A stretch of DNA of 64,000 nucleotides. Source: Zygnema circumcarinatum SAG 698-1b (lineage: Eukaryota > Plantae > Zygnematophyceae). This document shows, piece after piece, positions 3,219 to 57,722 of this stretch (position 1 is the first letter of the stretch; each line of letters starts with the position of its first letter). Below the pieces are notes generated by a model. That model was not told the origin of the DNA. It did not search any database and saw only the letters and a list, made by a program, of their open reading frames with translations. The translations under genes and the position numbers were made by a program. The stretch is from the NCBI GenBank assembly GCA_037447605.1, contig CM074818.1, positions 818,617 to 882,616 of the forward strand. The letters run 5' to 3'.

Positions 3219-6200
3219 ATGGCGGCGCAGACCGTTATGTTGCGGGACGAGCTTGTTTATGTGGAGGATGAGGAGTAAGTAGGGGGAGGCGAGGGGAGGG
3301 AGAGCGAGACCAGGAGAGGGAGGGAGTGAGGAAGGGATGGAGGAGGAAAGGGAATGGGGGAAGCGGAGAAAGGCAGAGGGAGAAGAGGGACGGAAGGAAA
3401 GGCAGCTCCATTGAAAATCTAATTTCAGGATTTGTTCCAGGGTTCAACTTACGGTTCATGTCTGTAGCAAAAAAAATAGGAACGGGTTGGAATTTTGTAT
3501 TTATGGTTTGCATTGAAGCTGAGACTGCGATGGTGTTGAATGCAGAGTCATATTCGATACAGGCTGCGATGGCGAGCGCAACGTTACCATGGAGGAAAAG
3601 CAAGACTTGGCAGGTCAAAATGATTGTACCAGCAATAACATGAGCACATACAAATATCTAATCTTTGTGTACAAAAGTAACTGTAACGTACTTTCAGAAT
3701 GCAAAGTAACACGGAACGTAAATAGAACATGCAAAACTCGATCGTTTTCCCATTGGAGCAAGAGGACGAGCTGGAGAATGTGGCTGTCATGGTTCCATTT
3801 CCAATCCCAAATACGTTGGGCCAAGTTGAAGCTTTCAATACGAAATGTGTCAACTTGGTATTGACAGGTTTTTGAAGGAGAATGCAGAAATTTATGCCAA
3901 AGTTCATCAGGCCAGCAACCACATTTGGATGTACATTCAGTTGGGATCGTTCGTTCTGTTCACGGCCCTATACATCACGGTGGTGTACCTGCAAGCGAAC
4001 TCATTTCTCACTTATGAGATTTCTACTTCTCATCAAGCTTTGCTTCCGCCAGTGAGTTTTCCTTACGTGCTTCTTCACGATTCTGAGGGTATTAGGGTTG
4101 GATTTTTCTCTCTGTCTCATGCTCTCTCAATACTCTTTTCCTTTTTCAAGTATTCCTCTCACTGGTTTCCTCTCTCTCGTTCTCCCTCGTTCCCATCATC
4201 ATGTCAACTCTTTCCCTCATTTCAAGTTGCAATGGAAACCATAAACTCGATTGTTTTATCCGATTCATGGAAACCCTCAACGACTAAATCCCAAACATCC
4301 TTATACGTCAACCTTGCATTTTTCCTCGCATGAGTGCGACAAAGGGGTCTTTAGGAGATCGTTGGATGTGTAAGTGACTTGTGGGGGGGAGCTTGTATAC
4401 ACCCTAATTTGAATTATTTTTTAATTCATTGTGTGTGGTTTGAACTAATTTAAGGTGTCTGCACGCAGGGCGCAAGTGCGACCGCCCCAGTCATATTCTC
4501 CAAAGGCCCGTCCGAAATATATGATTGGCTAAATGAATCGTTCATTCAGGTTGTTTTCTTCATCGTTTTTCCTAAATTTTTAGGTCCCTACATTCGCTTC
4601 TACATGGTACATTAGTAGAATCGTTTTTTTTTCCTTTCTTTTGGGGTATTAAGAATTGATGAGATCATAATGTGTAACGTGGGTCAGACCTGCAAGATCA
4701 GGATTCGTCCTGCAAGATTAGGGTTGGCCATGCAATATTCTGACTTGAAGTGCCAGGCTTTGACTATGAAGGTCCTGAAATGTGTGAATTTGGCATGCAG
4801 ACGGTGTGGGCGGATCCATTGTGCGGCAACGGCATCTGCGAGTCCCCGACGGAGCACGAACAGTTCGGACGGTTTGGCTGTTTGGCGGACTGCGGCAAGT
4901 TCGCGAACACAACAAGGGTCGTGCTCAGCCTCTCTAACGACTTCACTTCGCCGCAGGAGCAGGCGGCTGCCTCATGGAACCTCTGCATGTCGCGCCCCGT
5001 CGGGTTCTGCTGGTGAGGCCTGCTGCGTGCCAACACTCCTGCAGGGAGTCAGAGCAAGTAGATAGAATGTGTGGAATGTACTGAAGTTATTGCGGGGATG
5101 GTTCCGATTGTTCTTTAAGCTGGGAACAGATTTCGAACTTCTATTCACCGTGAACTTATCTCTCTTCCCTCTCCTACTCTCCTACTGCGCCCACTTGGCT
5201 TATTTTCTGCCTCCCGCGCTCACTCTCTCTTTCCTGTTCCTCTAACTCCCCCTCTCTTCCTTCTCTCCTAAATCTCTTCCTCGCCCTCTTTCCTCGACCT
5301 CTCCCTTGCCCGTATCCCGTTCTCCCCTCTCCCTCTCCCCTAACCCCTCTATTCTCTCTCACTCTTTGTCCCTCTCTCTAATCTCTCCTCTAACATCTCA
5401 CCACTCCCCTCCCCCTTCTGTCTCTCCCTCTCCTTCTCCCACTCCCTCTCCCTCTCCCTATCCCTCTCCCTACTTTTCCAGGTATTCTAGTGACCAGGTC
5501 TTTTTGGACCTCCATCAGGAAAACAACGAGATTCAGTTGGACCTCCCTGATGGCGACTGGAAGCTTCAGCTAAATGCGCCCTCGGGAGGAGTGGAGGGGC
5601 AGATTTTTTTGGCGGGCGATGTGTCGGATCTGCTCCGTTTTGGAGGTTGCAATGAGACTCAGCCGCTGTTCGATGCATGCAGAGAAGTGGGCCCCTGCCC
5701 TGCTTTGAGGGTTTTTAATGTTTCCTGCTTGTTAGGGTATGGCTCTTCAGGGGTCTAGAGGAACATTTTTTTAGGATTTGCGGAATGTGAGGGGAGGGGA
5801 GAGAAGTGAAGTGTACAGTTGAACTGACAATCAGGTGAAGATTGTGATTGTGATTGTTGTGTCAGGCCATTGCGACGCTTAGGGTTACCTGGCGTGTGAT
5901 AGTGAAGGCGTTGCGGGCCTATTCTTTTCCTTCGTCGTGTATTCCTTGTCCTTAAGTAATCATTTATCTAAACTCCTTGAAACTTATAAAGTCTGACATT
6001 GGCTTTTTTGGTTGTACTTTGAAGGCTTGTGCGTCGATCTCGACATGCATTCAAACATATTGCGAGCCATCAGCTGATTATTCTGGCGACCTGAATTATA
6101 CCATATCAACAGCATTTTCGGACTGTGCTACTGTATGCGCTTGGACTCCTGAAGCAGTGTTGGACCTGAACGTGACATCATGCAGCGATGATGTACGGCT

Positions 6201-9200
6201 CTCAATCCTAAACTCGGAAGGTTTGAGTATTTTTTTTTCTCAGTTCTTAAGATCAGGGTATAAAGGAAATAATTTGAACTGACGTTTCTTTCAGAATGGC
6301 TACTTTCGATATCCAGAAATGTAGTTTTGTCAGTTCCATTTTTTATTTGTATCATGTTTGTCTGGGTTGTTTTCACCAGATTTTGTTTTCTGGGGAGAAT
6401 CCGTTTCTCAAAACAGGATCCCTCAAATGCAATTGTAGGTCGCCTTTACCTTCGTCCCGCTTTTTTATCCTAGTTGAGTCTTTACGGCATTGTCTGGGTT
6501 CACTCGTCCAGCATAGGCTCTAAGTGCACTACATACCTCTGTTTTGCTGGAGGACTCTGAATATTACTTTCTTAGTGTTGGAGAAGTTTAGGATTTGAGT
6601 CTTAGTAAACGAGGGAGACAATGATCCATTTGGAGCAGGGACACAAAGTGCTGCTCTTGCACCTGCGCCTGCCCCGACTTCAACCCGATCAGGTCCGCCA
6701 CCTCCAGTCTCACCAGTGAGTGCTCTCTCTCTCCCTCTCTCTCATTCTATCCTTCTCTCCCTCTCCACGGTTCTCTCCTACGTTTCTCACTACCGGCTCT
6801 CAACCTTCACAAACCCTCAATCCTAAATGCTAACCCCTCGGCATACAGACGGTTGGCGGCCGTCGACTCTTTCAGTCCTCCGAAGATGACTACTGGCATA
6901 AGTGCACGGGTGACTCCTCCCTCCGCCTCCTCCTCTTCAACGCATTCTCTGTCGGCCTTTCTGCCCCCCCCCCAGTCCCTCCCTTCGGACCCTCGATTCT
7001 AACCTCCTTATCTTCTCCCCATTCACCTTCCCTCCCTCCACAGCGGCCGCACCCTCCACATCCGCAGCCCAGGATCTCATCTGGTCCGGTCTGGGCCGCG
7101 ACGACGACGAGCGCAACTACCGCATGGACCAAGCCGTGACGCGCGCATTTTTGACATTGATAAAGGACACGTGTATTGGGACTTATAGATTTTCGCAAAA
7201 TCACGCAATATATGGAATGGCAGCCTTCATGAAACTCTATATGGGAGCCTCCAACTCATCGACTAATTTCACCGATACGGAGATGGAGTGGACTGAATTT
7301 GCCACTTGGATTGCAAATGACACCTCAGTATACGGCTTGCTCTCGGCTTTGCACAAGGCACATCCGTGAGTGCGGGAACAGACCATCAACGTTCCAAATA
7401 ATCAAGAAACCTAAGCTTTCTATTAGCGCTCGCACTGGAAAATCCTCAAGCTCTTGAGAAATTGCGGAACCTTGGAGGTTTTAAGTGTTTTTAGAACCTC
7501 TGAAAAACTCGAGCACTATAAACACTTTTAAACGTGAGCTTATTTGTGTTTGCAGCGATCATTTTGGTCGTGATCAAGTCAATCGCTTTATCGACATCCT
7601 TGTTGCAGCCATTGCTTCGGTTGGCACCTTCAAAGATGACTATTTGGTAGATCTCGGAAACTGGCTGCATCGCATGGACGACTGTCTCGCGGATTCGGAA
7701 CGATACACTTGTCGTGAAGGTGACCTTACATTAAAAAATAAAATCGTTGGTTGTTTATGATTCCTGAAGGTTTCTTTTTTCGTTCCAACTTCTTTCAGTG
7801 TTTAATACATCGCATGAACATGATTATTCGTCCCTTCAGTTGCTTTCGGAATCTTCAAATGGTTCGGAGGTTTTAGGATTTTGTACGCCGTGTATAAAAA
7901 GGGTAATTGAGTTTTTTACAATTTAGGATTTGTACATTTTAGAGCATGTTAGATTTTCAGAGACGTGCGTAGTTTCTCACGAAAAGCTGACCATCAATGT
8001 TTTTCCAAAAAAATTGTTGTTGTTTTGCAGCGGATCACGTTCTGCCGTGGGCTTCGGGCTCGCAACTGAACCACACCGTCTCTGTGGGAGACACTGTGGA
8101 GTGGACCTGGACTGACGACAACCCGCACTCCATAGAATGTGCTCTCTCTGTCACTTTTGCCCCCTCATTTACTACCTCGCTCTCTCCTCTCCCTCGTCCA
8201 CTCTCTCTGCCTCCCACTCTCTCCCCTCCTTTTTTATCCAACTCCCTCTCCCCCTTTCTCCCTTTCTCCAGAAACCCTAAAATGTGTGTTAAAAAGTGTA
8301 GTTATTATCGGTATTGAATGTTTTCCGTAATAGCAAGGTTCGACTGTTTTTGTCTTTAGGGTTATCAGACTGCCTTCGTCTTTCATAATTGTACCTGCAG
8401 TGCAAATTATTTACTCTTTGAGCAAGTTTTTAGTGGCCTTTACGAGGCTTTAGAGTTGTGAGAAGTTGATTTCTGCAGCGCTCTTCAGGCGCCTCGCCTT
8501 CATCTCCCTACTCATCTCGTCTTTCCTCCCTCCCTTCTTCTACCTCCCTTCGTCCCTCCCTCCCTCTCCCTCCCTCTCTCCCTTCCTGCCTCCCTTCCTC
8601 CCCTCCTCCCTTTCCGTTCCTCTCTTCCTCCCTTCTCCTCCATCTTTTCCTCCCGTTGCCTTCCTCCTACCCACCCTCTCTCCCCATCCCTTGCTCCCTC
8701 CCTCGCTCACCCAGTTGTGAACAGTTCGGCCCTCACCATTGGCGACACCGCTAAATTTTTCTTGTATGGCTTTGGAGGCGGCCGATGGGCGGTTTCGAGA
8801 AAGACGAAGTGCTCCCCCGACAACCTCCACAAATACGGCGTGGTACCCTGCGTTCTTGGTATGTACTACGTATGTATATATGTATGAATGTATGTATGTA
8901 TGTATGTATGTTTGTATGTATGTATGTATGTATGTATATATGTGTATGTATGTATGTATATATGTATATGCTAGGGTTTCAGAGTGGTCACACGTTGTCC
9001 ACGGCATAGTTTTAAACTGAAAAGTGAAATCGCTTTGCGCAAGCAATGGTCAGCAATGTGATGCAGGGGAATCTTTTTCTGATCCTATCTGTTATTGTGT
9101 TCTCCGTGGCAGAACTTCCATCGGAAGGCCCTTCCACATTCAAATACTGCCACCATTTTTCTCCTAAAGAGTTTCCGGATCCCCCCTATGTTGTTCAGTA

Positions 9201-10713
9201 CTCGTCACGAGGCTATGGCGACTCAAATATCGGATACTTTACTATTCTTGAAAAGCCAAAAAGCCCACCATGTGAGTTCCATCTCCTAATCCATATTCTA
9301 CAAACCGTAAATCCCTAAAAACCCTAAAAACCTTGAACTACTCAAACCTTTCACATGTTCAGTTTTCTTAAGACAAATTTCATGTACTTCAAATGGCTCC
9401 GCTTGACTGCGGGAACAACATCTCGATCCACATTTTGCAGCTTCTTCAACCCCTAAACTTCTTTCTACTCTCAGGCCCTTGTTACAATTTATTTTTAGAG
9501 ATTTCCTGTTCATTTTCTTGCAGATGTTAGCAACAGATCGTACGAAAACTTCGTCCCCATCAATTACCAATGCTCAGAGAACTGCCCCTTGAGCCAACTG
9601 AGCAACGGCAAATGTGACCCAGCATGTAACAACTTCTACTGTGCATATGACGGGGGGGACTGCTCCTGCTCTTTGGATGAGGCCGGCCTCTCGTCCTGCG
9701 CCTGCCCGGCTGGGCAGGCAAGAGGAGACGAAGGCTGTAAGAAACCCTAAAAATCTTGAAAACTGCTTCAAACTCCAAAAACCTGAAAACTGTTCCTCTC
9801 TCTCTCTCCTCTCCCATTCCTCACTCCCACCTCTTTCGCTCTCTCCTCCCTGCTTATCTTCGCAGCAGTCCTCGTCACAGTTCCCTAAATGCCCCACTCT
9901 CGCTCGCTCTTTCTCTCGTTTTCTGCTCTTCTCTTTTCGTCTCTCTCTCTGTCTCTCTCTCCTTCGCCTTCCCTTTTTTCTTCTCTGCCTGCCTCGACTC
10001 CGCTTTTTGTCTCTCTCTGTCACTCTGCCTCTCTCGCTCTCTTTCCATTTTTCTCTCTCTCTACCCCCTTTTCCTCCGTCCTATTTCCCTCGCCCTATCT
10101 CCCTTCTCTTCCTTCCTCCACTCCTACCTTGAAGCTCGACATGTACCCTGTCGCCCACATTTCTGCATTGCATTGATTATTTGTTATTGCTGCAGTGTGC
10201 TGTGTGGGAGGAGCCATTGGTTCAAACTTGCAGTTTACATTTTCCCTTCGAACCTATGGAGAAAACTTGTCCGAGTCCAATGCAAATTTTGCTCCCTCAA
10301 GTACCACCCCTCTCACTCGCACGGTTGCCATTCAAAACAGGTAGATATTTAGATTTTCAAGACCCACGAAAAAAAAAAAAGGCACAAAAAAAGCCTGTAG
10401 TTTTTTCCACTGCCCGAAAAATTCTGTTCTTTTGTTCACTATTCGAAGGTTCCATGATTTTTAAGTGCTGACCCGAAAACTAGAGAGAAATCTCAGTTTA
10501 TTGGAGAAAAATCAGGTGTGAGGGGGATGTACAGGAGGGCAGAGGGGGGGTGAGAGAAGGAGAGGGGAGTTGTGAGAGGAGTGTGGGAGGGGAAGGAGGG
10601 AAGAAGAGGAACAAAAATATACATATTTTTTTTTTGCGCTGCAGAGTGGTAATTGGTCTACTACTTTCACAGGAAAGGACAAGCGGAGATTTGAAATGGT
10701 GTAATCAGGGAAA
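3219..10713 (+). CDS. Polycystin/TRPP (PKD2-like) cation channel, paralog A; 5' part only, 3' end lost in the gap at 10982-11081. Exons: 3219-3274, 3546-3613, 3888-4051, 4469-4549, 4801-5012, 5482-5686, 6025-6220, 6295-6320, 6380-6434, 6606-6715, 6849-6909, 7044-7365, 7556-7719, 8031-8138, 8715-8858, 9113-9271, 9524-9736, 10196-10340, 10645-10713.
   Basis: All 19 exons have GT-AG boundaries and consistent phases. Motifs: S1 TM (YIQLGSFVLFTALYITVVYLQANS), IYDWLN, DPLCGNGICESP..FGRFGCLADCG, LNR repeat (CSENC...NGKCDPACNNFYCAYDGGDC), and the polycystin TOP motif NRVVIGLLLSQER...C. Confidence 0.8.
8868..8970. repeat. (TATG)n intronic microsatellite
   Basis: Direct reading. Confidence 0.9.
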
Positions 10714-10981
10714 GTAAGCCTTTCTATGCGTTTCCCAGTGTTTGACTTTAATTTATATATTCTTTTTATTCAATTATCCTTTTCTACGTTCTGGAACCCT
10801 AGTGGCCTTAAAATCCCTCATATCGTGAGGACATTCAAGGCCAGCTTGATAAGGCTAGAAACTCTGAATATTTGAAACCTTAAAGTTAGCGTATGAAACC
10901 CTAAAAGTATGCTTTGAACCCTTAAGTTAGGGTTTTGAGACTTTCATTTCATGCTTTTTAACCCTGAAGTTAGGATTTTTG

Positions 10982-11081
10982 NNNNNNNNNNNNNNNNNNN
11001 NNNNNNNNNNNNNNNNNNNNNNNNNNNNNNNNNNNNNNNNNNNNNNNNNNNNNNNNNNNNNNNNNNNNNNNNNNNNNNNNN
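10982..11081. other. 100-N assembly gap of unknown true size between the two convergent channel paralogs
   Basis: Run of N. Confidence 0.98.
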
Positions 11082-11089
11082 GAGGTTAC

Positions 11090-14000
11090 TTCTCTGCATG
11101 CATTGAACAGCGGTTGAGTTTCATTGCAACCTCCAAAACGGAGCAAATCTGTTTCATTCCCCGCCATAGTAATCTGCCCCTTCACTCCTCCCGAGGGTGC
11201 ATTCAGCTGCAGCTTCCAGTCACCATCAGGGAGGTCCAATTGAATCTCATTGTTTTCCTGATGGAGCTCTAAAAAGATCTGGTCACTTGAATACCTAGGG
11301 AAGTAAAATAAAGGAAACAGTAGGGCCCCAAGATTAGGGTTTGTTCGATTGTTTTTTGGTTGGATAGACTGGCTTGCAATGTCGAACGAGTTGAATAGTT
11401 TCGGTGTTTGGTAGTGCCCGATGACCGAGAATGGAAAACATTCAGTTCTCAGGAACGAGTAAGCGGTAAAGGGATTACTTCAGATTTCAATGGTGAGGGG
11501 AGGTGGGGTGGGAAAGGGGGAGAGGAGAGAAGGCGGCGAGGGAGAGGAAGAGGACCAGGAGAGGCGAGAGGAGGAGAGATAGAAAAAAAGCTGAGAGTGA
11601 GGGGGAGTGGGGGGAAAGGAAAGAGAGGAGTGAGAAAAGTTCACGGTGAATACAAGTTCCAAACCTCCTCCCAGCTAAAAGAACCTTTAAAACAAATTCC
11701 CACAACCCCAGTGCATATTCCACACATTGTTTCTTCTTGCCCTAACTCTCTGCAGCAGGGTTGACGAGCAGCATCCTCACCAGCAAAGCCCAACGGGCAG
11801 CAGCATGCAGAGATTCCATGAGGCGGCCGCCTGCTCTTGTGGCGACGCAAAGTCGTTAGAGAGGCTGAGCACGACCCTTGTTGTGTTCGCGAACTTGCCG
11901 CAGTCCGCCAAACAGCCAAACCGTCCGAACTGTTCGTGCTCCGTCGGGGACTCGCAGATGCCGTTGCCGCACAATGGGTCCGCCCACACCGTCTGCAGGA
12001 AAAACCCGCACATTTCAGGAACTTCGTAGTCAGATTCGGGCACTCCAATTCCTAATCTTGCAGATCCAACCCTAATCTTGCAGGCTTAACCCTAATCTTG
12101 CAGGCTTAACCCTAATCTTGCAGGCTTAACCCTAATCTTGCAGGCTTAACCCTAATCTTGCAGGCCCAAACCTAATCTTGCAAGCCAAACCCTAATCTTG
12201 CAGGTCGAATCCTAATTTTGCAGGCTTAGCCCTAATCTTGCAGGCCCAAACCTAATCGTGTACGCCCAACCCTAATCTTGTAGGTCGAATCCTAATCTTG
12301 CAAGCCAAACCCTAATCGTGCAAACCGAACTCTAATCTTGCAGGCAGAACCCCAATCTTCAAGGATCAACAGTAATCTTCAAGGCCCAACTAAGCCAACT
12401 AGGCCTAACTTGGCAGACCAACTCCAATCTGGCAGGCCAACTTTAATCTGGCAAACTGAACCCTAATCTTGTAGGCTTAACCCTACTACTGATAGGCCTT
12501 ACCCTAATCTGGCACCCTAAACTGACAGGCACAACCCTAATCTGACAGGGCAATCCTTTGGTAGGCTTAAACAACATATTTGTAGGTCTTGGCATGACCA
12601 ACCCTAATCTTGCAGACCTTTCCAGAATCACGAGCTGATTTTGGAGCCCAAAACCCTAAGTCTGATGGCCCTTGCAAGCCAAATCCTATTTTGCAGATCG
12701 AAAGCCTACCTTTGGAGGTCCATCAATGCAAAACACAGCTCTCACTCTAATCTTGGAGGCAAAACTCTATTTTGCAGACCAAGCAATAGTTATGCAGACC
12801 TTAGCAGGTCAAACCCTAGCTTCACAGAACAAACTGTGTGGCTGCAGGAGAACATAACCCTAACTTCACCTCTTAACCCCTAAACCTTAACCCTCATCCT
12901 AACCCTAACCCTAACCCTAATTCTAACTCACCCTAATCCTGTCGAATCCATATCTTGCAGATGAAAGCCAGGCTCTACGGCTTCCTGTATGGAAAGGTAC
13001 ATATGCATGTTCTCAGGCGAGACTATGAACTTATCGAATGACCATATGAAAATGCATGTAGGGACCTAAGAATAAAGAGGAAAAGGAGAAGAAAATCAAC
13101 AAACCTGAATGAAAGAGTCATTTAGCCAATCATATATCTCGGAGGGGCCGTTGGAGAATATGACTGGAGCAGTCCCACTGGCGCCCTGCAAGCAGACATT
13201 TTAAATTACTTAATACCATACTCCCAATGAATAACAAGACGGTCCAAAGTGGAGTTTACACAACCTTCTCCCCCCAAGTCACTTCCACCTCCCCAAATTG
13301 TAAGCCTGACTAGCAATGACTCCTATGGCGCACACATGTGAGAGAAGATTCAAAGTTTTCTCGAATGACGAAATGTGACTCCGTCATTTAGGGTTTCCAA
13401 GAATCTGAACATTCAAGGAGTGTATGGTTTCCATTGCAACATGAAACAAGCAGGGAGAGGGAGTTGACATTACGAAGGAAGAGAGAGGGAGGGGTGGCAG
13501 ACCAGTGAGAGGGAGCCAAGAGAGTTGAAAAAGGAAACGGGTATTGAGAGAGTCAGAGACAGAGAGAAAGCTGCAACCCTAATACCCTGAGAATCGTGAG
13601 GAAGTCTCACCGGCGGAAGTAAAGCTTGATGAGAAGTAGAAATCTCATAAGTGAGAAGTGAGTTCGCTTGCAGGTACACCACCGCAATGTACAGAGCCGT
13701 GAACAGGACGAACGATCCCAACTGAATGTACTTCCAAATGTGGTCGTTGGCCTGATGAACTTTGGCATAAATTTCTGCATTCTCCTCAAAAACCTATCAA
13801 TAGCAGTTCACACATTTCTTATTGAAAGCTTCAACTTCGCCCAACGTATTTGGGATTGGAAAGGGACCCATAATAGTCAGCTAGTCCTCTTGCTTCATTG
13901 GAAAAACGATAACATTCTGAATGTTCTTTTTATATTCCGGTATTTTGCATTCTGTATGTACATTAAACGTTACAATTACATTTGTACACAAAGATTAGAC

Positions 14001-14706
14001 ATTTGTATGTGCTCATGTCATTGCCGGTACAATCATCTTGACCTGCCAGGACTTGCTTTTCGTCCATCCCATCGTAGAATCCGTCATCTCCGCCTCCTTT
14101 TAACATGACTCTGCATTCAACAGCATCGCATTTTCAGCTGCAATGCACCCAAAAACCTCGCACAAAAATATCCTGACATGAACCCTAAGTTGAACCCCGA
14201 AACAAATCCTGAAACTAAATCTTCAATGGAGCTCCCCTTCCCTCAGTCCCTCTCTCTCTCTCCCACTCCCCCTCCCTCTTCCCCTCCCTCCTCCATCCCT
14301 CCCTCTCTCCCTCCCCCCCCCTCTCTCTCTCTCCCTCTTCCCCTCCCTCCACTTACTCCTCATCCGCCTCCTCAAAAACCTCGTGCTCCTTCAGAGACCT
14401 CCCATGGAACCCCTCCTTTCCATGCCTCTTCCGTTCAGTTCCCGCCTGTTGAACAAATTCCGAAACAGCCGCCGTTCTCCCATCGGCCGGCGTTGAGTGG
14501 GAGCGCGTGAAGCCGGGGCGGTAGCTGTGGGCGGCCGCCGACAGGGAAAGCCCCGCCACATGCTCCCGTACAGTCATACCCAACTGAACGGAGTACGGCT
14601 GCGTGGAACCCCCGTCGAGGTCGTGCGTGGGAATGCCGCTGTGGTAGGGCTCACCCCCCGGCCCGTCCCCGCCCTCCTCCAGCAACTGCACGGCCTGCGC
14701 CGCCAT
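11090..14706 (-). CDS. Polycystin/TRPP-like channel, paralog B; first six exons (14706-14357, 14110-14043, 13774-13611, 13185-13105, 11992-11781, 11294-11090), remainder in the gap
   Basis: Exons 2-6 have the same lengths as in paralog A (68, 164, 81, 212, 205 nt), with near-identical peptides in exons 3-6 (GSFVLFTALYIAVVYLQANS, TVWADPLCGNGICESPTEHEQFGRFGC, DLPDGDWKLQLNAPSGG). Confidence 0.8.
12051..12620. repeat. 20-bp minisatellite (consensus CCTAATCTTGCAGGCTTAAC) in intron 4 of paralog B, degenerating rightwards
   Basis: Near-perfect units at 12051-12350, progressively diverged beyond. Confidence 0.9.
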
Positions 14707-15906
14707 GGCTGCTGGGAGAGGGCCAGGGAGAGGGGCAAGGGAGAGGGAGAGGGCGATAGCTGGCGAGGGAGAGGGAGAGGGCGGGATAGGGGGAGATGGA
14801 GGGAACACTTCCAAAGGTTCAATCAAAAGCCAGTCTACGTGGACATTATGGTCTGACGTGACAGGCTGTGATTGGTTCAATTCATCCACATCATGATGAC
14901 GTGGATCTGCCGCACCTGCGAGATTGGCCGGGAGAAGTGACGGCGGCGGAGGCCGTTTGGGGGCGGCGAACACGGAGGGTCTAGGTTCCATGTAAACTGG
15001 CCACGTCGGATTGAACTGAGCTCCGTGGAAAACTCGCGTTCCGTAAAACGCTGTCGTGGCAACCACGTCGATGCCACATCGGTGCCAATAGTGCCACGTC
15101 AGTGCCATTGGTGCCACGTCGGTGCCATGTCACTGGCTGGAGGCGGGCGTCGATTGTGGCGGACACCAGTACGGACGCGATATCGCGTGACATCCGATAC
15201 GCTCGATACGCTCTATATGAGTCCTCGCAGGTGGCGAGCTGAACGGTGTGATATCTAAAAATAAGGACAATCCTGGCCCTTACTTTTTAGCCCTTTCATT
15301 TCTTACAGCAAGTAAGAACTGATGAGGTAGCAGGAATTGATAAGAGTGAACATGTAAAACTTGCATCAGAAAGAGAGAGAGAGAACAAGAGAGAGAGAGA
15401 GGGCGGAGGGAGGAGCGCGAGAGTGGGGGGGAGTGGGAGCGTGAGAGAGAGAGAGAGGGAGGGAGAGGGGGAGAGGGGGGGGCAGGGTGATGGAGAGAAG
15501 GGGGGAGTGAGAGAGAGAGAGGGGGGAGGGAGAGAGATCGACGGGAAGGGAGAGGGAGAAAGAGACCGAGAGGGAGAGGAGGGGGGGAGGGGAGGGGAGG
15601 GGGGGGTAATAGGGGGAGGGGGAGGGGTGGAGTAGAGAGAGAGAGGGAGAAAAAAAAAACGATCAAAAAGTCTACCTTTCCTCTGCTTATTTCTCGGAAA
15701 TATTCCGCGCTCACTGGAGCAATACAAAAGCAGCCAAAAACAGAAAAACCTCCCAAAAAAAAAAAAAAAAAAATCTGCCTCTCGAAAGCTGCACGAAATC
15801 GTGGCGAAAATCTTGGCCCTCTCTGCGGCCTCAAATTGACCTAAAATTGATTCCGCAATTCCAAAATTTGGCCTCAACTGAATGCATGGAACCAGCCGCC
15901 CCGTAA

Positions 15907-18900
15907 TCACGATATCCCCAATTTCCCCAATTTCGGAACCGGCATTTCGGAGGAATTATTATTTGCAGAAGACAGGGACCGAGGGGTGCCGGCCGCAGGG
16001 TTTGAACTCGGGACCTGCCAGCTGGACTCGACCAAAAGCCGCTTCAAAAGTTCGTAAGAAGAAAAGAAAATCGCTCCTTGAGAGACGTATATCATCAGTC
16101 GAGGCAGAAGGCCCCTGTACGGAACAGACAAAAGGGGTTTAGGATTATTAGGGTTTGAGAGTTATATCGGGTTTCGAGGGTTTTAGCAGCTCCTTCCTTA
16201 CCTCCATCCCACCCTCTCCTCCTCCCCTTTCCCCTCTCCTCTCCTCCCTTTCTCCGTCACCATTTCCCTCTCTCTCTCTCCTCCCTCTCCCCTTGCCCCT
16301 AACTCTGTCTCTGCCTCTCCCTCCCCCTCTTCCTTTTCCCCCTCGTCCTCTCCCTTTCCCACTCCCTCCCCCTCACCCGCTCTCACTCACTCACCCTCTT
16401 CTTCGCCCTCTCCCTCTCCCTCGTCCTCTCCATCGCCCTCTCCCTCTCACACTCCCTCTACCTCTCATTCTCCCTCTCCCTCTCCCTCTTCCTCTCCCTC
16501 GCCCTCTCCCGCTCCCTCTTCCTCTCCCTCTTCCTCTCCCTCTCCCCCTCTCTCCCCATCGCCCTCTTCCCTCCCACTCTCACACCTGTAAAGGCCGCCC
16601 ACTCCCTCCTCCACGGCAATTCGCAGAAAGGCGTCCGCAACGCCGGTGTACTGCACGCCGCCCGCTGCCTGGGATAGGAGGGAGAGACAGAGAGAGATGA
16701 GGGGGAGACAGAGAGAGATAGGAGAAGGGAGAGGGGGTGAGGGTGAGAAAGAGGGTCAGGAGAAACGTAGAGAGAGGTGAGAGAGAGAGAGAGAGGTGTA
16801 TGGGGAGGGGGATTGGAAAGGTGATGGATCACAGGTACACATTAACTTTTCAAAAAGTTGTCCCAAGCAAGTTTACATGCTTTTGAAGGGTTTTTTTTTA
16901 AGTTGCGGGCAGCAGAAGATTGGGATGAAAGGAAGAATGAATGAAAAGAATTTGACCTCGAAATCGGTTATGTTCATTCATCACCTTTGGGACATCACCA
17001 AGATGTTATGACAGTGTTTTAATCAGAAGGGAAGTTCTTAAAGTACACTAAAAAACTCACTTGGGTTTGAAGGCGGGTCTTGATCACATCAAAAGGCGTA
17101 GTGAAAAAAGCAGCAGTGGAGCCGGCTGCTCCTCCAATCAGAAGCTGAGAAAAAAATCATAGAAAATTAAACGAATAGGTAAAACAAAATTGTCAATTAC
17201 CAAGTTATGATTTGTGGTTTTCATTCGTCGAACTCACCCATCCTCCCCCCATCTTTCCTGTTTTTTCTCTGTTTCGGTGTTTGCACGCAGCAGTCCTTGA
17301 AAGATTGGGGTTCCATACTGTAAAAAAGCTTTCAGGCTTTTCAGAAAGTAGGCATTGGGTTCTTAGGGTTTAGGGTTCAGGATTTAGGGGTTAGGGTTCA
17401 GGGTGTAACGTTTAATGTATAGGGTTCAGGGTTTAATGTTTAGTGGTTAGGGTTCAGTGCTTAGGGTTCGGGGTTTAGGGTTTAGCGTTCAGAGTTTAGG
17501 GTTCAGGGTTTAGGGTTTAGGGTTTAGCATTCAGGTTTAGGGTTTAAGGTTCAGGGTTCAGGGTTTAAAGTTGAAGGTTTAGGCTTTAGGGCTCAGGTTT
17601 TAGGGTTGAGGGTTGAGGGTATTCGGATTTTAGGGTTGATCGGGGTCTTTCACATGTGAGTTATCGAGGGCGGTACCTGCGTGACAGGTGTCATGCGCTC
17701 ATTGGCGGCCTTATCCTTCAAAGCTCTGTGCTTGAGCGCTTCGTAAGTCCAAAACTGCACACATTTTTCAGTCAAGATTTTAACCCTTATAAAACCCTAG
17801 TAAATCCCAAACAAAAAAGTTAACTCTAACAGAATCCTAACAAAACCCTTCTCAATTCTCAATTCTAAAAAGCAAAAAAAATCCCTCAAGAGTCCGAACA
17901 ACGCCCAAGCAGCAGTTTAGGGTTTCTGGAAAATTAGGGTTTCCTTTTTTAGGGTTCTGAAATACCTTGGACCCAAAAATAGTTCCGTATGAATGAATGA
18001 ATGAATGAAGGGGAGATGTTGTATTGGCGCACACCTTTATAACGGACTGTGGCACGTTACGGCATAGAACGGCTCCGAGACCTTTGTAAAGAGAGGAGAC
18101 ACCCTCCGTCCGAGCAATGCCGATCAGAGCTTCCCTGTAAGCAATGACACAAAAAAAAAAATTTAGAAAAAAAACCATGTCCATGTAAAAGAAACAAAAT
18201 GGACGAACCGAAACCAAGAGAAACAAATTCATGCAACCAAAAATATATATAAATATACATATATCAACAAATTATCCTCCTCTATTACCAACCAGCTTGT
18301 CTTGTAGAGGGTAGTTCCGAGCTGCATTCGCTGCTTCACTGCCTCGCTCGGAGTGTACACGGCGGAGGTTGCCACGCTGGCAGCCCCTCCGGCCACACAG
18401 TGCGCGACAGCTGTCCACTCCTGCCCGCCCCCCCCCCCCTCTAGGGTTAGGGTTTAGGGTTTAAGGTTTGGGGTTTGGGGTTTGGGGTTTAAAGTATAGG
18501 GTTTGGGGTTTGTAGGGGGGTTGGGGTTTGAGGTTCGTAGAGGGTTTGTGGACACTATTTTAAGTTTAGGGTTTAAGGTTTCGCATGTAGAGCTCAGGGC
18601 TTAGGTTTTAGGGTTTTAGGATTAAGGTTTATAGCTTCGGGTCTAGAGTTTAGGGTTTAGGGTTTAGGGTTTAGGGTTTTAGGATGTGCTGACCTTGGGC
18701 AGGCGCGGCAGAAGCGCCCCCTTGACGGCTTCATAGGTGGAGGTGTAGATGGCGGAAATGGGCGCCGCCGTCACCAGGTTCGCCCCCAACCCCTTGTAGA
18801 GCCCGCCGGGCCCTGAACCCTCGCGGCAGATCGAGGTCAGGGAGTAGGGTGTGGGGTGTAGGGTTTATGGTTTAGCGTGTAGGGTTTAGGGTTAGTTTTA

Positions 18901-20234
18901 GGGTTGGGGTTTAGGGTTCAGGGTTTAGGGTTTAGGGTTTAAGGTTTAGGGTTCGGAGTTTGGGGTTTAGGGTTTAGGGTTTAGGTTTTAAATTTTAGGG
19001 TTTAGGGTTCGGGGTTTGGGGTTTGGGGTAAGGGTTTAGGGGTTTAAGTTTAAGGGTTTAGGGTTTGAGGATAAGAGTGAAGGGTTTAGGTTTTAGGGGT
19101 TTGAGTTAGTTAGAGTTTGGGGTTTGGGGTTTGGGGTTTCGGATGTCAGAATAGGGTTTAGGGTTAAGGGTAAGGTTTAGAATTCAGTGTTTTGGGTTCA
19201 GGGTTTAGGGTTCATAATTTCGGGTTCAGGATTTAGGATATTAATGATTAGAGTTTGGGGTTAAGGGTTTCGGGAGTAGGGTTTATTGATTAGTGTTTCG
19301 GGTTCAGGGTTCAGGGTCTAAGGATCAGGTTTAGGATTAAGGGTTTAGGCCAAGAGTCTAGGTTTAGGGTTCAGGGTTTCAGATTCAGGGTTCAGGATTT
19401 GGGTTTAAGGGTTTAGAGTTTGGCGTTCAGGGTGTGGGGTTAGGGTCCAGGGTAGTTCGGAGTAAGGTTCAACATTAGAATTTAGGGTTAACAGAGCTAA
19501 GGGTTTAAGTTTAGGGTTTAGGATTCAGGACTGAGGATTCAGAGTCAAGGGGTTCAGCATTTTTTGTTCGGTGCTCAGAGTTGATCACCAGTCAGTGTTC
19601 AGCATTTCATTACTTCGCCTGGAACACCAAAAAACGTAAGAAAACTAAAACCTAAAAAAGTACACCCTTTCCACCCAGAACCCCCTCCCCGCCACACCCT
19701 ACACCCTAAAACCCTAAACTCCCTCCCACCCCCTAAAACCCTCGACCCCCCCTCCACTACCCCCTGAAACCCTCAACCCCCCCTCCCCCACCCCTGAAAC
19801 CCTCAACCCCCTCTCCCCCAAGACCTAAAACCCTCAACCCCCCCCCTCCCCCACCCCCTAAAACCCTGAACCCCCTCTCCCTCCCCCCCTGAAACCCTAA
19901 ACCCTTCCCCCCTTCCCCTCCCCCCCGGCTCACCTGTTTCCCTGACGAAGGCGGCGAGCGCCTGGAGGCCCGCGCGCCCTGAACCCCTCCGGCTCTGGAG
20001 GAGGGTTTTGGCCGTGTCTAGAGGGTGCAGGCAGCAGCTCACTGCCGCGCCGGCCAGGCCCCCCGCGGCGGCGGCCCTGAACCCGGCCGGCTTCCGTACG
20101 CCCTCCGTACGCCCTCCGTACGCCTTTTGGACGTCGCGCCACTTGACGGTGAGGGAGGGGCTGCCGGCCGGCAGGGACACGTGGCAGGCGGAGATTGGAG
20201 GGTTGGGGACACGTGGCGAGGGTGAGTCGCCCAT
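15907..20234 (-). CDS. Mitochondrial carrier family (SLC25) protein, SAM-carrier-like, resembling Arabidopsis At4g11440; about 8 exons
   Basis: Three carrier repeats with P-x-[DE]-x-x-[KR] signatures: HPLDTAKTLLQ, TPSEAVKQRMQ, TPFDVIKTRLQ. Also GLYKGLGANL..APISAIY, LCRNVPQSVIK and GLYRGLLPRLMIYVSQGAIFFSSYE. Confidence 0.9.
17357..17640. repeat. Degenerate telomere-like (TTTAGGG/TTCAGGG)n tract in a carrier intron
   Basis: Direct reading. Confidence 0.85.
18442..19550. repeat. Degenerate telomere-like (TTTAGGG)n tracts in two carrier introns, interrupted by the exon at about 18694-18812
   Basis: Direct reading. Confidence 0.85.
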
Positions 20235-21254
20235 GGGGGGCTAAGAGGGCGCCACGTGGCGCCTACATGGCAAGGCGGCTGGCTCCACGTCGGCACAGCT
20301 GGCGGCACGGCGGGGGGTTGGACCTGCCGTTCTATGTCCCAATTGACCGTTTCTGTCCTACGGAACTATATTTAAAAAATATATTTTGGAGCCGATTTAT
20401 AAACCAGTAATTTTTTTTAAATAAATCAATCAACCAATCGTTTTTTGCCACGTAGGACGGTTTGTGCACATGGCGGTTCAGGATTGGAGGCTGCTCGAGT
20501 GATTATTCTCCAACATTTCAAAATGCAGAAAGGCCTTCCACATGTGAACGGAATCAGGTCAGAGCGGATCTGCAAATATCCGGATCAGCCACTTGCTCGT
20601 GTGAACAGCCACCTTGTCCGGATGTTGTCGGCCGCGAAGTGTGACAGGGAGTCCGAATTATCCGGTTCGCGTCGGCAACCCGCCCTTCCTGGGGTGCCCA
20701 GCTGTCCTCCTCCCCCTCCCTCTCCTCCCTCTCTCCCTCTCCCTCTCCTCTCTTTTTCTTCAACTATTCTACATAATCATCACTTGATCCCACCCTTTTG
20801 CCCTCTCTCTCTCCCCCCCTCCCTGCCTTCTTCCCTCTCTCCTTCCCTCCCCCTCTCCCTCCCTCACTTCCTCCCTCCTTTCGCTCCCTCCCTCGTCCCT
20901 CGCTCCCTCCCTCCCTCTCCCTCCCTCCCTCCCTCCCTCCCTCCCTCCCTCCCTCCCTCCCTTCCTCTCTCCCGCGTCCTTTTGCTCCTTTTCTTTCCCT
21001 CCCTCCCTCCCTCTCTCCATCCTCCCTCCCTCCCTCCAACCCTCCCTCCCTCCCTCCCTCCCTCCCACTCTCCCTCTCACAGCCCGCAATGATATCCCTA
21101 TCTGACCAAGCTCTGGCCCAAGCCCAACCTCTCCGCCTCTTCTCAAGCGGTCCCCGCTCTTCTCCCAGTCACAGTTTCACTTCCAGCTACGGTTTCCGCA
21201 TTCCTCTCCCTCCTTTGCAGTATTGCTGACGTCAGCCCTAATTTTTCTGCCGCC

Positions 21255-44384: not shown

Positions 44385-44593
44385 CGAGCCTCCAACCCTA
44401 AAGAGTGGCCTTCCTCTCCCGCTTCCAACTGTCAACCTCTCTCCCTCTCCCTCTTCCGTCTCCCTCTCCCTCTTTCTCCCCCCTGCTCTCTCCTTCCCGT
44501 GTTCTCCCTCCCTCGGCCTCCTCTCTGTCCTTGTTGTTTGTGAGCAGGAGAAGCAGAGAGAAGGAGGAGGAGGCAGGCAGGCGAGCGGCCAAC

Positions 44594-45795
<1,202 letters not shown>

Positions 45796-48926: not shown

Positions 48927-51204
48927 ATGGTGCCACGTGTCGTGGTGGCATTGGCGGTGGTGCTCTTGGTCGTGAGGGGCCTCGGAGGGCGAGTGCCGAC
49001 GGGCGACCAATTGGATCGGTGAGGTTTTTGGGTGCCTTTGAGGGGGGGAGGAGGGCTGCGATGTGAAGGGAGAGGGAGAGGGAGGGGGAGAGGGAGAGGG
49101 AGCATAAATCATTTGAATCTGGTGAACCTGGAAGGTGGGGGCGAGGGAGGGTGAGAGGCAGGGAAGAGAGGAGAGGGGGTGGAGTTGGGAGTGGTAGTGA
49201 AAGTGAGGCATAGGGAGAAAGGAAGGAAAAGAGACAGAGGGAGGATTTTGATAAAGAGTAGAAAAGAGAAGAAATACAGAGAGAGAGAAGGGGAGGAGAG
49301 AGATAGGGAGACGACAGAGAGGATGGAGAGAGAGAGAGGGGGTTGAGAGCGGGCGGAAAGAAAAAGGTGGGAGAGAAAGTGGAAGAGATCGCATTGGACA
49401 ACTTCAGGAGTTTATTTCTCATGTTATCTATGTACGTAATATATTTGAAAATATATTTTCTCTGGTTTGCATCCATGAGCCAGCTACTTTTTAAACCAGA
49501 GTGAGCCAGCAACTCGGTGAAAGAAACTTTCAAAGCTTGCTATCCAAGTTTCTATACGCCACATTCCATTTGTAGATTCGTAGATTAGGAATGGATTTCT
49601 TACTCCCTCTCGCTCTTGCCCTCCCTCCCCGCTCTCCTTCCCCGTCCTCCCTCACTTCCCCACTCCACCCCTCCCCACTGCCCCTCGCTCGGCTTGCCCC
49701 GCTTCCCTTCGCCTCTCTCATCTCCCTCTTGCTCTCCCCCACTCCCTCTCACCTCCTTCTCACCTCCCTCTCCCTCTCTCCTCCCTCTCTCACTCCCTCT
49801 TTCATCCCGCTCTTTCTCTCCATCTCGACCTCGCTTGCCCTCTTCCTCTCCCTCCCCTTTCCCCTACCCCTCCACCTCCCTCATTCTCTCCTTGTCCTTC
49901 TCCCTTTCCCCTACCATTTCCCCTCTCTCTCTCTCCCACTCCCCCTGCCTCCACCTCCATCTTGCCTCCTTCCCTCCCTCTCCCTCTCTCGTTTCCCACT
50001 CCCTCTTCCTTTTCCCTCTCTCCCTGTCGTTTTCCCCCTCTCTCTCTCTCACTCTCCCTCTCTCTGTCATTCTCCCTCTCACTCTCGCTTTCCCACTTCC
50101 TCCCTGTCTCCCCCTCGCATACCCATCCCCCTTCCTGCCCCTCTGCCCCTCCCTCTCCTCTATCCCTCGCTCTCGCTCTCGCTCTCCCTCTCACTTATCC
50201 TTCTCCACCCTCTCTCTCGCTTTCCCTCTCCCCCTCCAACTACCCCTTCCCCCTCCCGCTCCCTTCCCCCTCTCTCTGCCTCTCTCTCTCCCTCGCCCTC
50301 ATTAATTGAGTTGTGGTTTCTCTACTTCCTTGTTCACCCTCTCTGCCTTTTCAGGCCCACTGTGCGCAAACTTGCACTTTTTAAAAGTGTCTCATCGCCA
50401 GAGGCAGTTCCCGGAATCGGTACATCTCAGATCTTTGACTAAATCATGCCATGCTTTCAGTTACGCTTCTTGTCTCGCATTGAACCATTCGATTTTTATG
50501 AATGCTATTTACGAAATTTAATCATTAACATTTCTCAAAGTTCTTCAACAGTGAAACAGTGGCCCAAAACGGAGGGCTACCCTTCATGGAACCGCACAAC
50601 GCCGCCGGAAACAGGCAGCTGCGAAACCGTTTGGGGCAACGGATTTTCCGAATTCATCGCCGTACATGGAACGCCTAAGAAATCCTCTTATCCATCTTAC
50701 TCTTCCTCCTCCCACACCCCCATACAAGAAGAAAAGCCCATTACATGGGAACTTTCCGACCCAAAAAACATCAACGAAGGGAGAAAAGATAATGCTCGAT
50801 CTACTGAAGCCGAAAATGTGAGTGATAGCTCCAAAGTAGAGGTAGCCCCAGGGTGGATAGAATGTAGGAGAAACCCTACTTTGAGGACATCTATATGTGA
50901 AGGGCATGGCATGGTGATGCATCCCCACATGGTAGCCATGGCCATGGGGGGAGAGGAGGTAGAGGCAGTCTTGGGGAGGACAGATGAGGAGGAGTGGCCC
51001 GAGATAGTTCCTGGAAGCTTCCAGGTCATGGGAGGAGGAAGAGGAAGAGGAGAGGGAGAGGGAGAGGGAGAGAGGGAGCTCGTATCGGCGGAGATGAGAG
51101 ACCGGCTTTATCCTTCCGCTGTCAATGGGAAGAAGAGAATAGCGTTCTGGCAACACCTTCTGGGGGGGCTGCAGGAGACTCCTTCAGTGACATGTGCAAC
51201 GGTA

Positions 51205-51274
<70 letters not shown>

Positions 51275-53251
51275 ACTGCCTGCCTCTCTTCCTCTCTCCC
51301 ACTGTCTCTTTCTCTCTTTCCATCTCTCTCTTTCTCCCTCTATCCCCCCTTTCCCTTCTCACCTCTCGACCTCTGTGTCGTCATTGCCACCCTAAGGCTT
51401 TGCCTCTTTCGCTCTTCTTCACTTTCTCTGTGTCCCTGTCGGTTACCTTCCACGCTCTTTCCCTCTCGTCCTCCTTCCCCTCTCCCTTCTTCTCCCAGAA
51501 GCCCCCATCGCTCCCCCTTCCCCCTCTCTCTCTCCTTCCTCCCTCCCTTCCCCGTCTCCCTCCCACTCCCTCTCCTCCTCCCACTCCCACAGTCCCAGAA
51601 GCCCTGAACCGTGTCTCTCCCTCTCCCTCTCCGTCTCCCTCTCCCTCTCCCTCTCCCTCTCCCTCTCCGTCTCCCTCTCCCTCTCCCTCTCCCTCTCCCT
51701 CTCCCTCTCCCTCTCCCAGGTGTTCCCTGACCCCGTCCTCCTCGTGTCTCGCTTCGAGTACGTGAACGTGTACCACACTCTCACCGATTGGGAGGCCGCC
51801 CTCCGCACCGCCAAACTGCTCGCCCTCCCCCGCCCGCCCGGACTGCTCCTCCTCGACGGCCACGCCAAGGTAAGGGGGGGGTTAACCATGGCGGTGGTTA
51901 ACCATTTGGTTGGTCATCATTGACTTGACTCGGCTTTATGACTATGTATGACTCGTCACAGTAACATCATAAACCCTAAAAACCACCAAACTTACCAAAG
52001 CTCTGAAACAACAACAACACTCACCGTCCCTTAAGCTTGTAACCTTCCTGCCCTCCCCTCCTCCTTTTAACCTTCCACCCACCTTCCCTTTGACATTAAA
52101 TCTTTAACTCTTAATCCTGAACCCCCCCCCCCCCCCCCCCNNNNNNNNNNCCCCCCCCCCCCCCCCCCCCCCCCCCCTCTTCTAATTTCCCCTCTTCTGT
52201 GCAGGGTGTGCTTGACCCGACTTGGCACACCCTATTCAATGGAGTTCACTTTGCAAAGCATCTCCCCGGGCCGGTCTGCTTCCATCACCTTATTATGGTC
52301 CCCTTCGGCTACTCTTCGCCCATTTTTCAAACGCACAAAAAGTGGTTGGGACCGCTCATTGAATGTAAAGCGGGGATTACTGAAACGGAACGGAAACAGA
52401 AACTGAAAAGGAACGCTGTCACGCTGTGGCGCAGCCACGTGTCGACTAAAGAGAGGTGGGAAACTTCGAGGTCGTTGGAGTTGACGGAAACCTTTGTTCG
52501 CTCTTTTGGGATCGACAAGGAGGGTCCCTCGTATCGAGATATGTTCGATAAGTGGACTGTGAAAGGGATGAGAGGGGTGAGGGAGATGAGTCTCCCGCTA
52601 CAAGCAGGTTCTATGCGAATTCTGTTCGTTCGGCGAGAGTATTTTTTGGCTCATCCAAGAAGTAAAAATGGGCCTGTTTCGAGAATTAATGAAGAGAGTC
52701 TTTACGAGGCTTTGAAGGAGTGGGCGAGAGAGAGAGCGGGTGTGGTAGACTTTAAGGAGTTGGAGGAGGAGGAGATAAGAACGAGGGACCCCAGAGCGCT
52801 CGCGAGAGCTGTGAGAGAGGGAGAGAGAGAGAGCGTGGGAGGGAGGCAGGGAGGAGAGAGCATGGAGGAGGGCAGCAGCAGGAGACAGCTTCTGAGAGAG
52901 AGAAAAGAAGCGAGTAAGAGAGTTTCAGGAGCAGGTGGGAGAGGTGAACCACGAGCCTATGTTATCAATGGTAATCTCGCTCACATGCCTTTCTATGAGC
53001 AGGTGGAGATGGCCTACAGGGTCGATGTATGGCTGGGCGTACATGGAGCAGGTTTGACTCACTTACAGTTCTGTCGGCCCGGAACGCATGTAATTGAGAT
53101 TCAAGCAGGGCCCAAAGACACTCAATATGAGCTCTTAGCTCGAGTGAGGGGGCTGCCCTACCATAGGGTTGTGACAAGGAAGGAAGTGGAGGCATGGAAA
53201 GTGCTCGACTTGTTGGAAAAAATAGCAGGGAATGCATTTGGGCGGTCGTGA
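48927..53251 (+). CDS. XYLT: Beta-1,2-xylosyltransferase (GT61); exons about 48927-49018, 50355-50419, 50552-51201, 51720-51869, 52206-53251
   Basis: N-terminal signal anchor, KQWP...[61 protein letters not shown] and [10 protein letters not shown], as in plant XYLT. Confidence 0.9.
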
Positions 53252-56024: not shown

Positions 56025-57722
56025 ATGGGCGGCTCCCTGAGTGGCCAGAAGCTCGCCGAAGTCCACGACGCGAAGGACCTCCAGTTCGCCGTCGACCCCC
56101 TCCCACGTGCGGTCCACCAGCCCAAGCCCCCGCGTGTGGGCCCCACCCCCGCCCCTCCCCCTCCCCTTCCCCCTCCCACCGCCGCCGTCATCTTCCTCCA
56201 CGGCCTCGGGGACACCCCCGAGGGCGACTACGCCAAGGAGTTCCGGCGCCACGTGGCGCCCAATCCGGGCTCGGGGCACATCAAATGGCTGGCCCCCGCG
56301 GCTCCGAGGCAGCCTGTGACCGGCCATGGCGGGCAGGTGCTCCCGTCATGGTTCGACATTCTGGAGTTTCCCATTCGCGTGGAGGGGCGGAGGAGCCGTT
56401 CGCAGGATGTGATGGCGGCGGTGAAGGGAGTGCACGCTCTCATAGAGAGCTGCGAGGCGGAGGGCATCGACTCAAGGCGAGTTCTCCTTGTGGGGCTCAG
56501 TCAGGGCGGGGCCACCGCGCTCGTCAGCGCTCTCACGTACCCTAAGCCTCTCGCAGGCTTAGCGGTTCTATGGGGGTGGAATCCGTTGCGGGACAAGGCA
56601 CTGGAGCGGGCGATCCATGCGCAAGCGCGGAGCCTGAAGATGATTTGGAGCCATGGAATGGCGGACCCTGTTGTGAAGTATAACAATGCAGTGGCAAGTG
56701 TGAGATTGTTAGAGCGGCTCGGGGTCGCATGTGAGCTCCACAGCTATCCTGAGGAGGCGCATCGCCCGCACAAGCAGGAGTTTGCCATGCTCAGCATGTG
56801 GGCTCGCGAACGGATTCCGCCCATAGAACCCAAGTATTGGGCCAGCCAGCGTCTGCAGGAGGAGCAGAGAGAGGGCTTTCAGAAGAGGGAGACCGACGGG
56901 TGGGAGTCATCTTCGAGCGACGAGGATTCAAAGAAGCCTACCGCGGCTATAATATGGCTGCATTCGATTGGGGAAAAGGCTTGGGGAGGCGTCTCTTCAA
57001 ACTTCAACCTGCATATCATGAATCTTGGAGGAGGCATGGAGCATGTGAAGTGGGTAGCGCCCAGTGCCCCAGTGCAGGCGGTCACATGCGACTCCGCCGT
57101 AGAAATGCCCTCGTGGTTTGACTTTTGGGAGGTTCCTGTGAAGGTCACATCACCGAAAAGTCGCAAAGAAGACGTGTTCAGAGCAGTGAAAATAATTCAC
57201 TCTCTGATTGACAAATGTGAAGAGAAGGGAATCAGCTCAAGGCGAGTCGTCCTTGTGGGAGTTGGTCAGGGCGGGGCGGCAGCCCTAGTCAGCGCGGTTA
57301 CATGTGAGAAGCCGCTCGGCGGAGCAGCTGTTCTATGGGGATGGAATCCGTTGGAGAGACGGGAGCTTATGGAAGCTGCTAAAGGGAGGGCCAAGGGGCT
57401 GGAGGTCCTTTGGAGCCATGGAATGGCTGACGCTGTTGTGGAGTACGAGAACGCAGGAGAAGGGTGCCTGACTTTGAAAGAAGTGGGCGCCAACGTTGAG
57501 CTTGTTGGGTATGAGCATGAAACGCATAATCCCCATCGAGCGGAGATGGAGGTGTTGCGGCTTTGGCTGAAGCGACAACTTCCTGAAGTAGGGAAGGAAA
57601 CCACGAGGAAAAACTCGAGGGAGGAGGGGCCCTTGAGTGCCATCAAGAAAGCTTGGTGTATGGGCAGGGATAGTGCTATGTATAGGAGTGTAGAGAGCAG
57701 GCGAGGAATGAGCGTGGAGTGA
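56025..57722 (+). CDS. Intronless protein with two tandem phospholipase/carboxylesterase (acyl-protein thioesterase, SOBER1/TIPSY1-like) domains
   Basis: 565-aa ORF. Domain 1: FLHGLGD, PSWFDI, GLSQGG, HGMADPVV, EAH. Domain 2: WLHSIGE, MPSWFDF, GVGQGG, HGMADAVV, ETH. Confidence 0.9.
   Translation: MGGSLSGQKLAEVHDAKDLQFAVDPLPRAVHQPKPPRVGPTPAPPPPLPPPTAAVIFLHGLGDTPEGDYAKEFRRHVAPNPGSGHIKWLAPAAPRQPVTGHGGQVLPSWFDILEFPIRVEGRRSRSQDVMAAVKGVHALIESCEAEGIDSRRVLLVGLSQGGATALVSALTYPKPLAGLAVLWGWNPLRDKALERAIHAQARSLKMIWSHGMADPVVKYNNAVASVRLLERLGVACELHSYPEEAHRPHKQEFAMLSMWARERIPPIEPKYWASQRLQEEQREGFQKRETDGWESSSSDEDSKKPTAAIIWLHSIGEKAWGGVSSNFNLHIMNLGGGMEHVKWVAPSAPVQAVTCDSAVEMPSWFDFWEVPVKVTSPKSRKEDVFRAVKIIHSLIDKCEEKGISSRRVVLVGVGQGGAAALVSAVTCEKPLGGAAVLWGWNPLERRELMEAAKGRAKGLEVLWSHGMADAVVEYENAGEGCLTLKEVGANVELVGYEHETHNPHRAEMEVLRLWLKRQLPEVGKETTRKNSREEGPLSAIKKAWCMGRDSAMYRSVESRRGMSVE

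Follow-up and report, generated by a model that had tools for sequence, protein, structure and literature searches.

A helical module in the S1-S2 loop of a PKD2-type gene of Zygnema circumcarinatum carries a weak globin-like signal

The S1-S2 loop of PKD2 is extracellular (PMC10846610, PMC11015965), and in Chlamydomonas PKD2 (CHLRE_17g715300, P0062) it is cleaved in vivo into fragments that stay associated (PMC10846610). Among globins, chimeric forms of the T1 type are reported from ciliates, and word searches of the review in question showed none fused to a channel (PMC7475203). Our literature searches found no globin-TRP fusion. Non-heme globin folds are also known (RsbR, phycocyanin, photoglobin), and these lack the proximal His (PMC8717448). 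An earlier note on DNA of Zygnema circumcarinatum SAG 698-1b had proposed that a domain resembling group I 2/2 truncated hemoglobins lies in the outer loop of a polycystin/TRPP channel. Here we describe this locus and compare it with the known systems.

The window, which is the whole 64,000-nucleotide stretch analysed, contains an intron-rich eukaryotic gene on its plus strand, and 15 exons between positions 3868 and 10713 join with compatible phases into a stop-free chain of 791 codons, running from an S1-like helix to a TOP motif. The chain begins with an exon for the S1-like transmembrane helix, ending in YLQ (3868-4051), and continues with a small exon in the region of the first TOP helix (4469-4549; AG/GT, phase 0-0), which is kept in a minus-strand copy. 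Next come an exon with a Cys motif common to green-algal PKD2/SIP-like proteins (4801-5012) and a beta-rich exon (5482-5686) with weak matches (E 1e-5 to 1e-3), probably an Ig-like domain as described for CrPKD2 and SIP (PMC11015965). A Cys-containing exon without a match (6025-6220), a Pro/Ala-rich linker exon (6606-6715) and a 61-base mini-exon with an RRLF motif (6849-6909) follow, the last directly 5' of the helical module. Both small exons are needed by the chain and were absent from the earlier note, and the passage from phase 0 to phase 1 fits only with the mini-exon. Downstream of the module, three phase 1-1 exons (8031-8138, 8715-8858 and 9113-9271) look cupredoxin-like by eye; no copper-ligand set was seen in them, and exon-by-exon profile scans gave no family match. 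They are followed by a phase 1-1 LNR (Notch) repeat exon (9524-9736; PF00066, E 9e-9) and by two exons with the NRVVIG TOP motif (10196-10340 and 10645-10713). A 100-N scaffold gap lies at 10982-11081, and beyond it the gene is lost to view.

The helical module is encoded by exon A (7044-7365), which has AG before 7044 and GTGAGT at 7366 and runs from phase 1 to phase 2, and by exon B (7556-7719), which has AG in front and GTGACC at 7720 and runs from phase 2 to phase 1. Joined in frame through a split Pro codon, they give the peptide quoted in the earlier note, with 486 bases, no stop and canonical AG/GT ends. The splice that the note had read between these two exons is thus borne out by the splice sites, the phases and the stop-free chain, all of them read from the genomic sequence. 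Coding-likeness was 0.36 bits per codon in exon A and 0.26 in exon B, against about -0.15 in the intron between them, values that are rough because the training frames were partly off. The outer boundaries of the pair are both phase 1, and the same holds for each of the three downstream cupredoxin-like exons and for the LNR exon. In exon A a linker precedes candidate A-B-C-E helices; then come a segment bearing three N-glycosylation sequons (7253, 7265 and 7316) and a candidate F helix, in which the His at 7361-7363 is the candidate proximal residue F8; exon B holds candidate G and H helices.

Other parts of the window were also inspected. Short ORFs at 1-1020 are charged and coiled-coil-like and may be C-terminal exons of an upstream PKD2 gene. 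By eye, the window further contains a mitochondrial-carrier-like gene (15900-20250, minus strand), a profilin-like exon (44405-44720, plus), a glycosyltransferase-61-like gene (50446-53251, plus) and an intronless tandem double phospholipase/carboxylesterase ORF (56025-57722, minus).

The family of the gene was identified from its N-terminal exons. A DNA pattern for the Cys motif retrieved 120 metagenome loci, mostly algal, and prasinophyte PKD2-like ORFs of these loci, several carrying PF08016, matched the S1 exon (blastp, E ~1e-7) and the Cys exon (E ~1e-18). The same two exons gave ~20 bits (phmmer) and 54-61 bits, respectively, to chlorophyte PKD2s, and a region search returned chlorophyte PKD2s including that of Chlamydomonas. 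A TOP-strand profile of the chlorophyte PKD2s found its best place in the window in exon 10645-10713, as a short match (E 0.046). The helical segment therefore lies in the S1-S2 loop, between S1 and the TOP motif as the earlier note had placed it, and it would be extracellular. Including the A+B pair, the loop is estimated at ~900-930 aa. Of 94 long homologues, 28 have a motif of the form R[RK][LM][LFQ] no more than 800 aa downstream of the Cys motif, and RRLF is a candidate cleavage site in the loop.

Chlamydomonas PKD2 and SIP/MST3 share with the Zygnema gene the S1 helix, the Cys motif and the beta region next to it. Chlamydomonas PKD2 also has a dibasic RRL-type loop motif (an RRLL stretch), the NRV(I/V)G TOP strand and a very long S1-S2 loop, but it showed no match to exons A and B, the LNR exon or the cupredoxin-like exons, and no pore was found for the Zygnema gene in the window. 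The prasinophyte proteins L148, L168, L236 and L239 share this N-terminal module, behind which extracellular domains are inserted, in L148 and L239 after an RRML/RKL-type motif. At the loop position where the Zygnema gene has the helical module, the cupredoxin-like fold and the LNR, the prasinophyte relatives instead carry LamG, Kringle, Big_12, DUF285, F5/8 or Sushi domains. In these four ORFs the insertions form long LamG, F5/8, Kringle or DUF285 arrays, and no pore was seen. A predicted algal protein (P0054) has a heme-peroxidase-like domain (PF00141) before PKD2, which may be a gene-model fusion.

No homologue of the exon A/B segment was found among the fetched algal relatives or in the database searches. 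The 29 chlorophyte-type and 5 prasinophyte LamG-type proteins neither resembled exon A or B nor matched a globin profile, and the full-length relatives that searches retrieved were of chlorophyte and prasinophyte type, with none recognisable as streptophyte. Exact look-up of the window ORFs in the databases found them absent. Judged from these domain contents, the S1-S2 loop is a domain swap site in green-algal PKD2. A foreign domain is therefore expected here in kind, which makes a globin plausible, yet is no evidence for one. By a slight preference, we read the module as a heme-free accessory unit of a shuffled ectodomain cassette in an algal PKD2-type subunit.

Library and structure searches were made exon by exon. 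Every query, alignment and fold was thus a half-domain, so that all negative results have reduced power. The comparison of the peptide with 2/2 globins by profile and structure, which the earlier note had proposed as a check, returned no globin on this basis. Exon A had no globin match in Pfam, NCBIfam or PDB sequences, and exon B had chance matches only in the same three collections. A phmmer search of exon A against 1.84 billion representatives gave two matches, both to unrelated repeat proteins and neither to a globin; a word-index search of exon A gave none, and a search by ESM Atlas features gave penicillin amidase at low recognition, then nothing, and no globin. No relative of exon A was found in viral contigs, and a single match in plasmids was rejected as chance, since it lay over a membrane-protein ORF in another frame. 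We fetched 109 2/2 globins, of which all five checked were Bac_globin, and built an HMM from 106 of them; it scored exon A at -0.1 bits, a value matched or exceeded by 25% of shuffles, and exon B at 0.6 bits (5% of shuffles). HHalign assigned globin probabilities of 0.3% to exon A and 0.7% to exon B. Hmmsearch with a 3/3 profile gave -2.1 and -0.1 bits for the two exons.

Single-sequence AlphaFold modelled exon A at pLDDT 45 with helices at residues 10-37, 43-60, 74-83 and 85-97, which fall at the places of B/C, E, an extra helix and F, and the model found no globin in three structure libraries. A genuine half-globin folded in the same way reached pLDDT 72.5 with truncated hemoglobins as its top matches. 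Since a close family member served as control, the contrast excludes a typical member of the family and not a remote one.

Signal was further sought with a targeted glocal test, in which insertions at AB and EF carried a low cost and each exon was scored separately, end-to-end, on the corresponding profile half; the two scores were then summed. Against the 2/2 profile the sum was 11-13 bits (p ~0.001-0.002 versus shuffles and general decoys), under a gap model that was chosen after the sequence had been seen and was tuned to the globin hypothesis. Held-out divergent true 2/2 globins reached 34.5-49.9 bits in the same scoring, and the module scores about a third of these. Against a 3/3 profile, which was narrow (16 bacterial F-family globins), the score was 4.3 bits (p 0.002-0.013). 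A 3/3 reading suggested by alpha-globin was tested with this bacterial F-family profile and rejected, as it scored no better than the 2/2 one. Given freedom to place the junction anywhere over 13 positions, both profiles set His 7361 on F8, although two further His stand within 3 residues of it, and both agreed on the register of the G helix in exon B (3.8 and -0.7 bits). Of 24,000 decoy windows from real proteins, none attained the 2/2 and the 3/3 score together, whereas about 1% of amphipathic decoys with a His near the junction reached either one (p ~0.01), a value that would lose its significance if thousands of families were searched. A weak globin-like signal is thus present, and it comes mostly from the F and G helices. 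The N-terminal half fits three incompatible registers of like score (9.3, 7.2 and 5.1 bits). That of the earlier note is the best of the forced 2/2 registers, at 9.3 versus 7.2 bits; in the second, all three Phe (B9, CD1, E14) are present, but five residues of helix E are deleted.

Compared with group I (T1/N) 2/2 truncated hemoglobins (Bac_globin, PF01152), the module has a fitting domain length, a compatible order of helices, a candidate F8 His and the residues F4 Leu, E14 Phe and G12 Leu, with an Asp at the B/C corner. It differs from them in B9, the CD1 spacing, E11, the EF Gly-Gly and G5, in an insertion of ~25 residues plus 5 at AB, and in what would be an extracellular, channel-fused setting. 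In the register of the earlier note, the residues are B9 Ala, B10 Phe, E11 Met, E14 Phe and G5 Val. Of the 2/2 helix pattern that the note had aligned, with Phe at B10, CD1 and E14 and His at F8, B10 Phe and E14 Phe stand, the helix order is compatible and His 7361 is a candidate F8; the match is weak, and CD1 falls in a two-residue gap, with Phe 7190 one position off. The Gly pattern of the family, with Gly-Gly motifs at AB and EF and a Gly before F, is not matched (Gly-Arg and Gly-Ala), and the distal site, polar in the family with Tyr B10 and Gln E11, has Phe and Met. Among the fetched group I members, the second EF Gly is present in 94 of 95 and Gln E11 in 88 of 95, and conservation at CD1, E11 and the second EF Gly ranges from 93 to 99%. 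Because several defining features are missing and the score is about one third of that of divergent members, the module is not classed as a group I truncated hemoglobin, contrary to the earlier assignment. Bacterial 3/3 F-family globins (flavohemoglobin globin domain) resemble it in length (~145 aa), in the F/G/H helix pattern and in the His at F8, but the module has neither B10 Tyr nor CD1 Phe in its best register against them. As described, the non-heme globin folds differ from the module in lacking a proximal His, for which it has a candidate.

The module may instead be a divergent heme-binding globin, either 3/3-like or descended from the 2/2 type and carrying a glycosylated EF insertion. 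On that account His 7361 would hold the heme in an apolar pocket of B10 Phe, E11 Met and E14 Phe, and O2, NO or redox state would alter its shape and gate the channel through the TOP domain. The convergence of two profiles on one F8 and one G-helix register argues for it, as do the low p against shuffles and general decoys, the p of ~0.01 against amphipathic His-bearing decoys, and the top rank of the earlier note's register among the 2/2 registers. A natural bacterial 2/2 globin (L042:5575-5979) has a 37-residue EF-loop insertion at the same EF site, and all three sequons of the module fall inside its proposed insertion. Against it stand the B9 Ala, the CD1 gap, the E11 Met, the Gly-Ala in place of the EF Gly-Gly and the G5 Val, together with the late choice of gap model. 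The pocket offers no distal hydrogen-bond donor for O2, no homologue of the segment was found to show that the His is kept, and no pore was found for this gene copy in the window. Taken together, we consider this account doubtful. Judged from the sequence features, the fold has an even chance of being a worn-down, globin-derived one; that it is a heme-binding globin seems rather unlikely; and gas or redox gating of the channel seems decidedly improbable, His 7361 being the sole pointer to both. The whole proposal, namely that a TRPP channel of an alga close to land plants has an extracellular heme globin, its exon pair (phase 1-1) shuffled in next to the cupredoxin-like fold and the LNR, and is the first globin-coupled TRP and an O2/NO/redox sensor, we regard as unlikely.

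A further possibility concerns the gene copy rather than the fold. It may encode an incomplete channel subunit, that is, a pore-less SIP-like protein or a truncated duplicate, or it may be an assembly that joins two fragments at the gap. No exon for S2-S6 with a pore loop (PF08016) was found anywhere in the window, in which the gene can be followed as far as the N gap at 10982; of the polycystin/TRPP channel named in the earlier note, the gene family holds on S1 and the algal Cys motif, and the pore domain is absent from the window. An inverted paralogue of the 5' part of the gene (11088-14384, within a minus-strand region noted at 11088-14708; 76-88% DNA identity) enters the same 100-N gap before its helical module would be reached, so that two copies converge on one gap; together with the PKD2 neighbour upstream, this suggests a local cluster of three copies or a mis-join. 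Pfam found no channel domain in the L236 and L148 ORFs with the same N-terminal module (stop-to-stop ORFs, which may be single exons), and Chlamydomonas SIP is a pore-less fragment of this kind (PMC10846610, PMC11015965). However, the chain reaches the C-terminal TOP strand, and the donor left open at 10714 suggests that the gap hides further exons. The paralogue exons are 88-93% identical to those of the plus copy and intact in the four compared, with pN/pS 0.2, so the gene has been under selection after duplication. We therefore hold an incomplete subunit to be improbable, and the gene presumably encodes a complete channel. An intron of the minus-strand copy contains a tandem array of ~20-base units with CCCTAAT (12050-12480), and two or three related units occur at 4685-4740 in the plus copy.

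That the exon pair is usually skipped or decays, with no domain made, is very improbable: loss of this phase 1-1 pair would leave the frame intact, and the pair occurs in no homologue or database product found, but its 486 stop-free bases, canonical splice sites and coding-like composition speak against this.

On the favoured reading of a heme-free accessory unit, exons A and B would give a compact all-helical module of ~145 residues, which opens a variable cassette right after RRLF and is followed in it by the cupredoxin-like fold and the LNR. The module would work without heme, as a glycosylated spacer or a binding module. The loop may be cut near RRLF, with the pieces remaining together as they do in Chlamydomonas PKD2. 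The cassette would stand above the TOP domain and pass partner binding or mechanical load to the gate, a coupling that may be likened to the role proposed for mastigonemes with CrPKD2.

If the module does bind heme, a fused globin would directly couple gas or redox sensing to a TRP channel, and an algal polycystin without a known stimulus would gain a testable ligand. If it does not, the S1-S2 loop of green-algal PKD2 is still a site of domain swapping, occupied here by an uncharacterised helical module.
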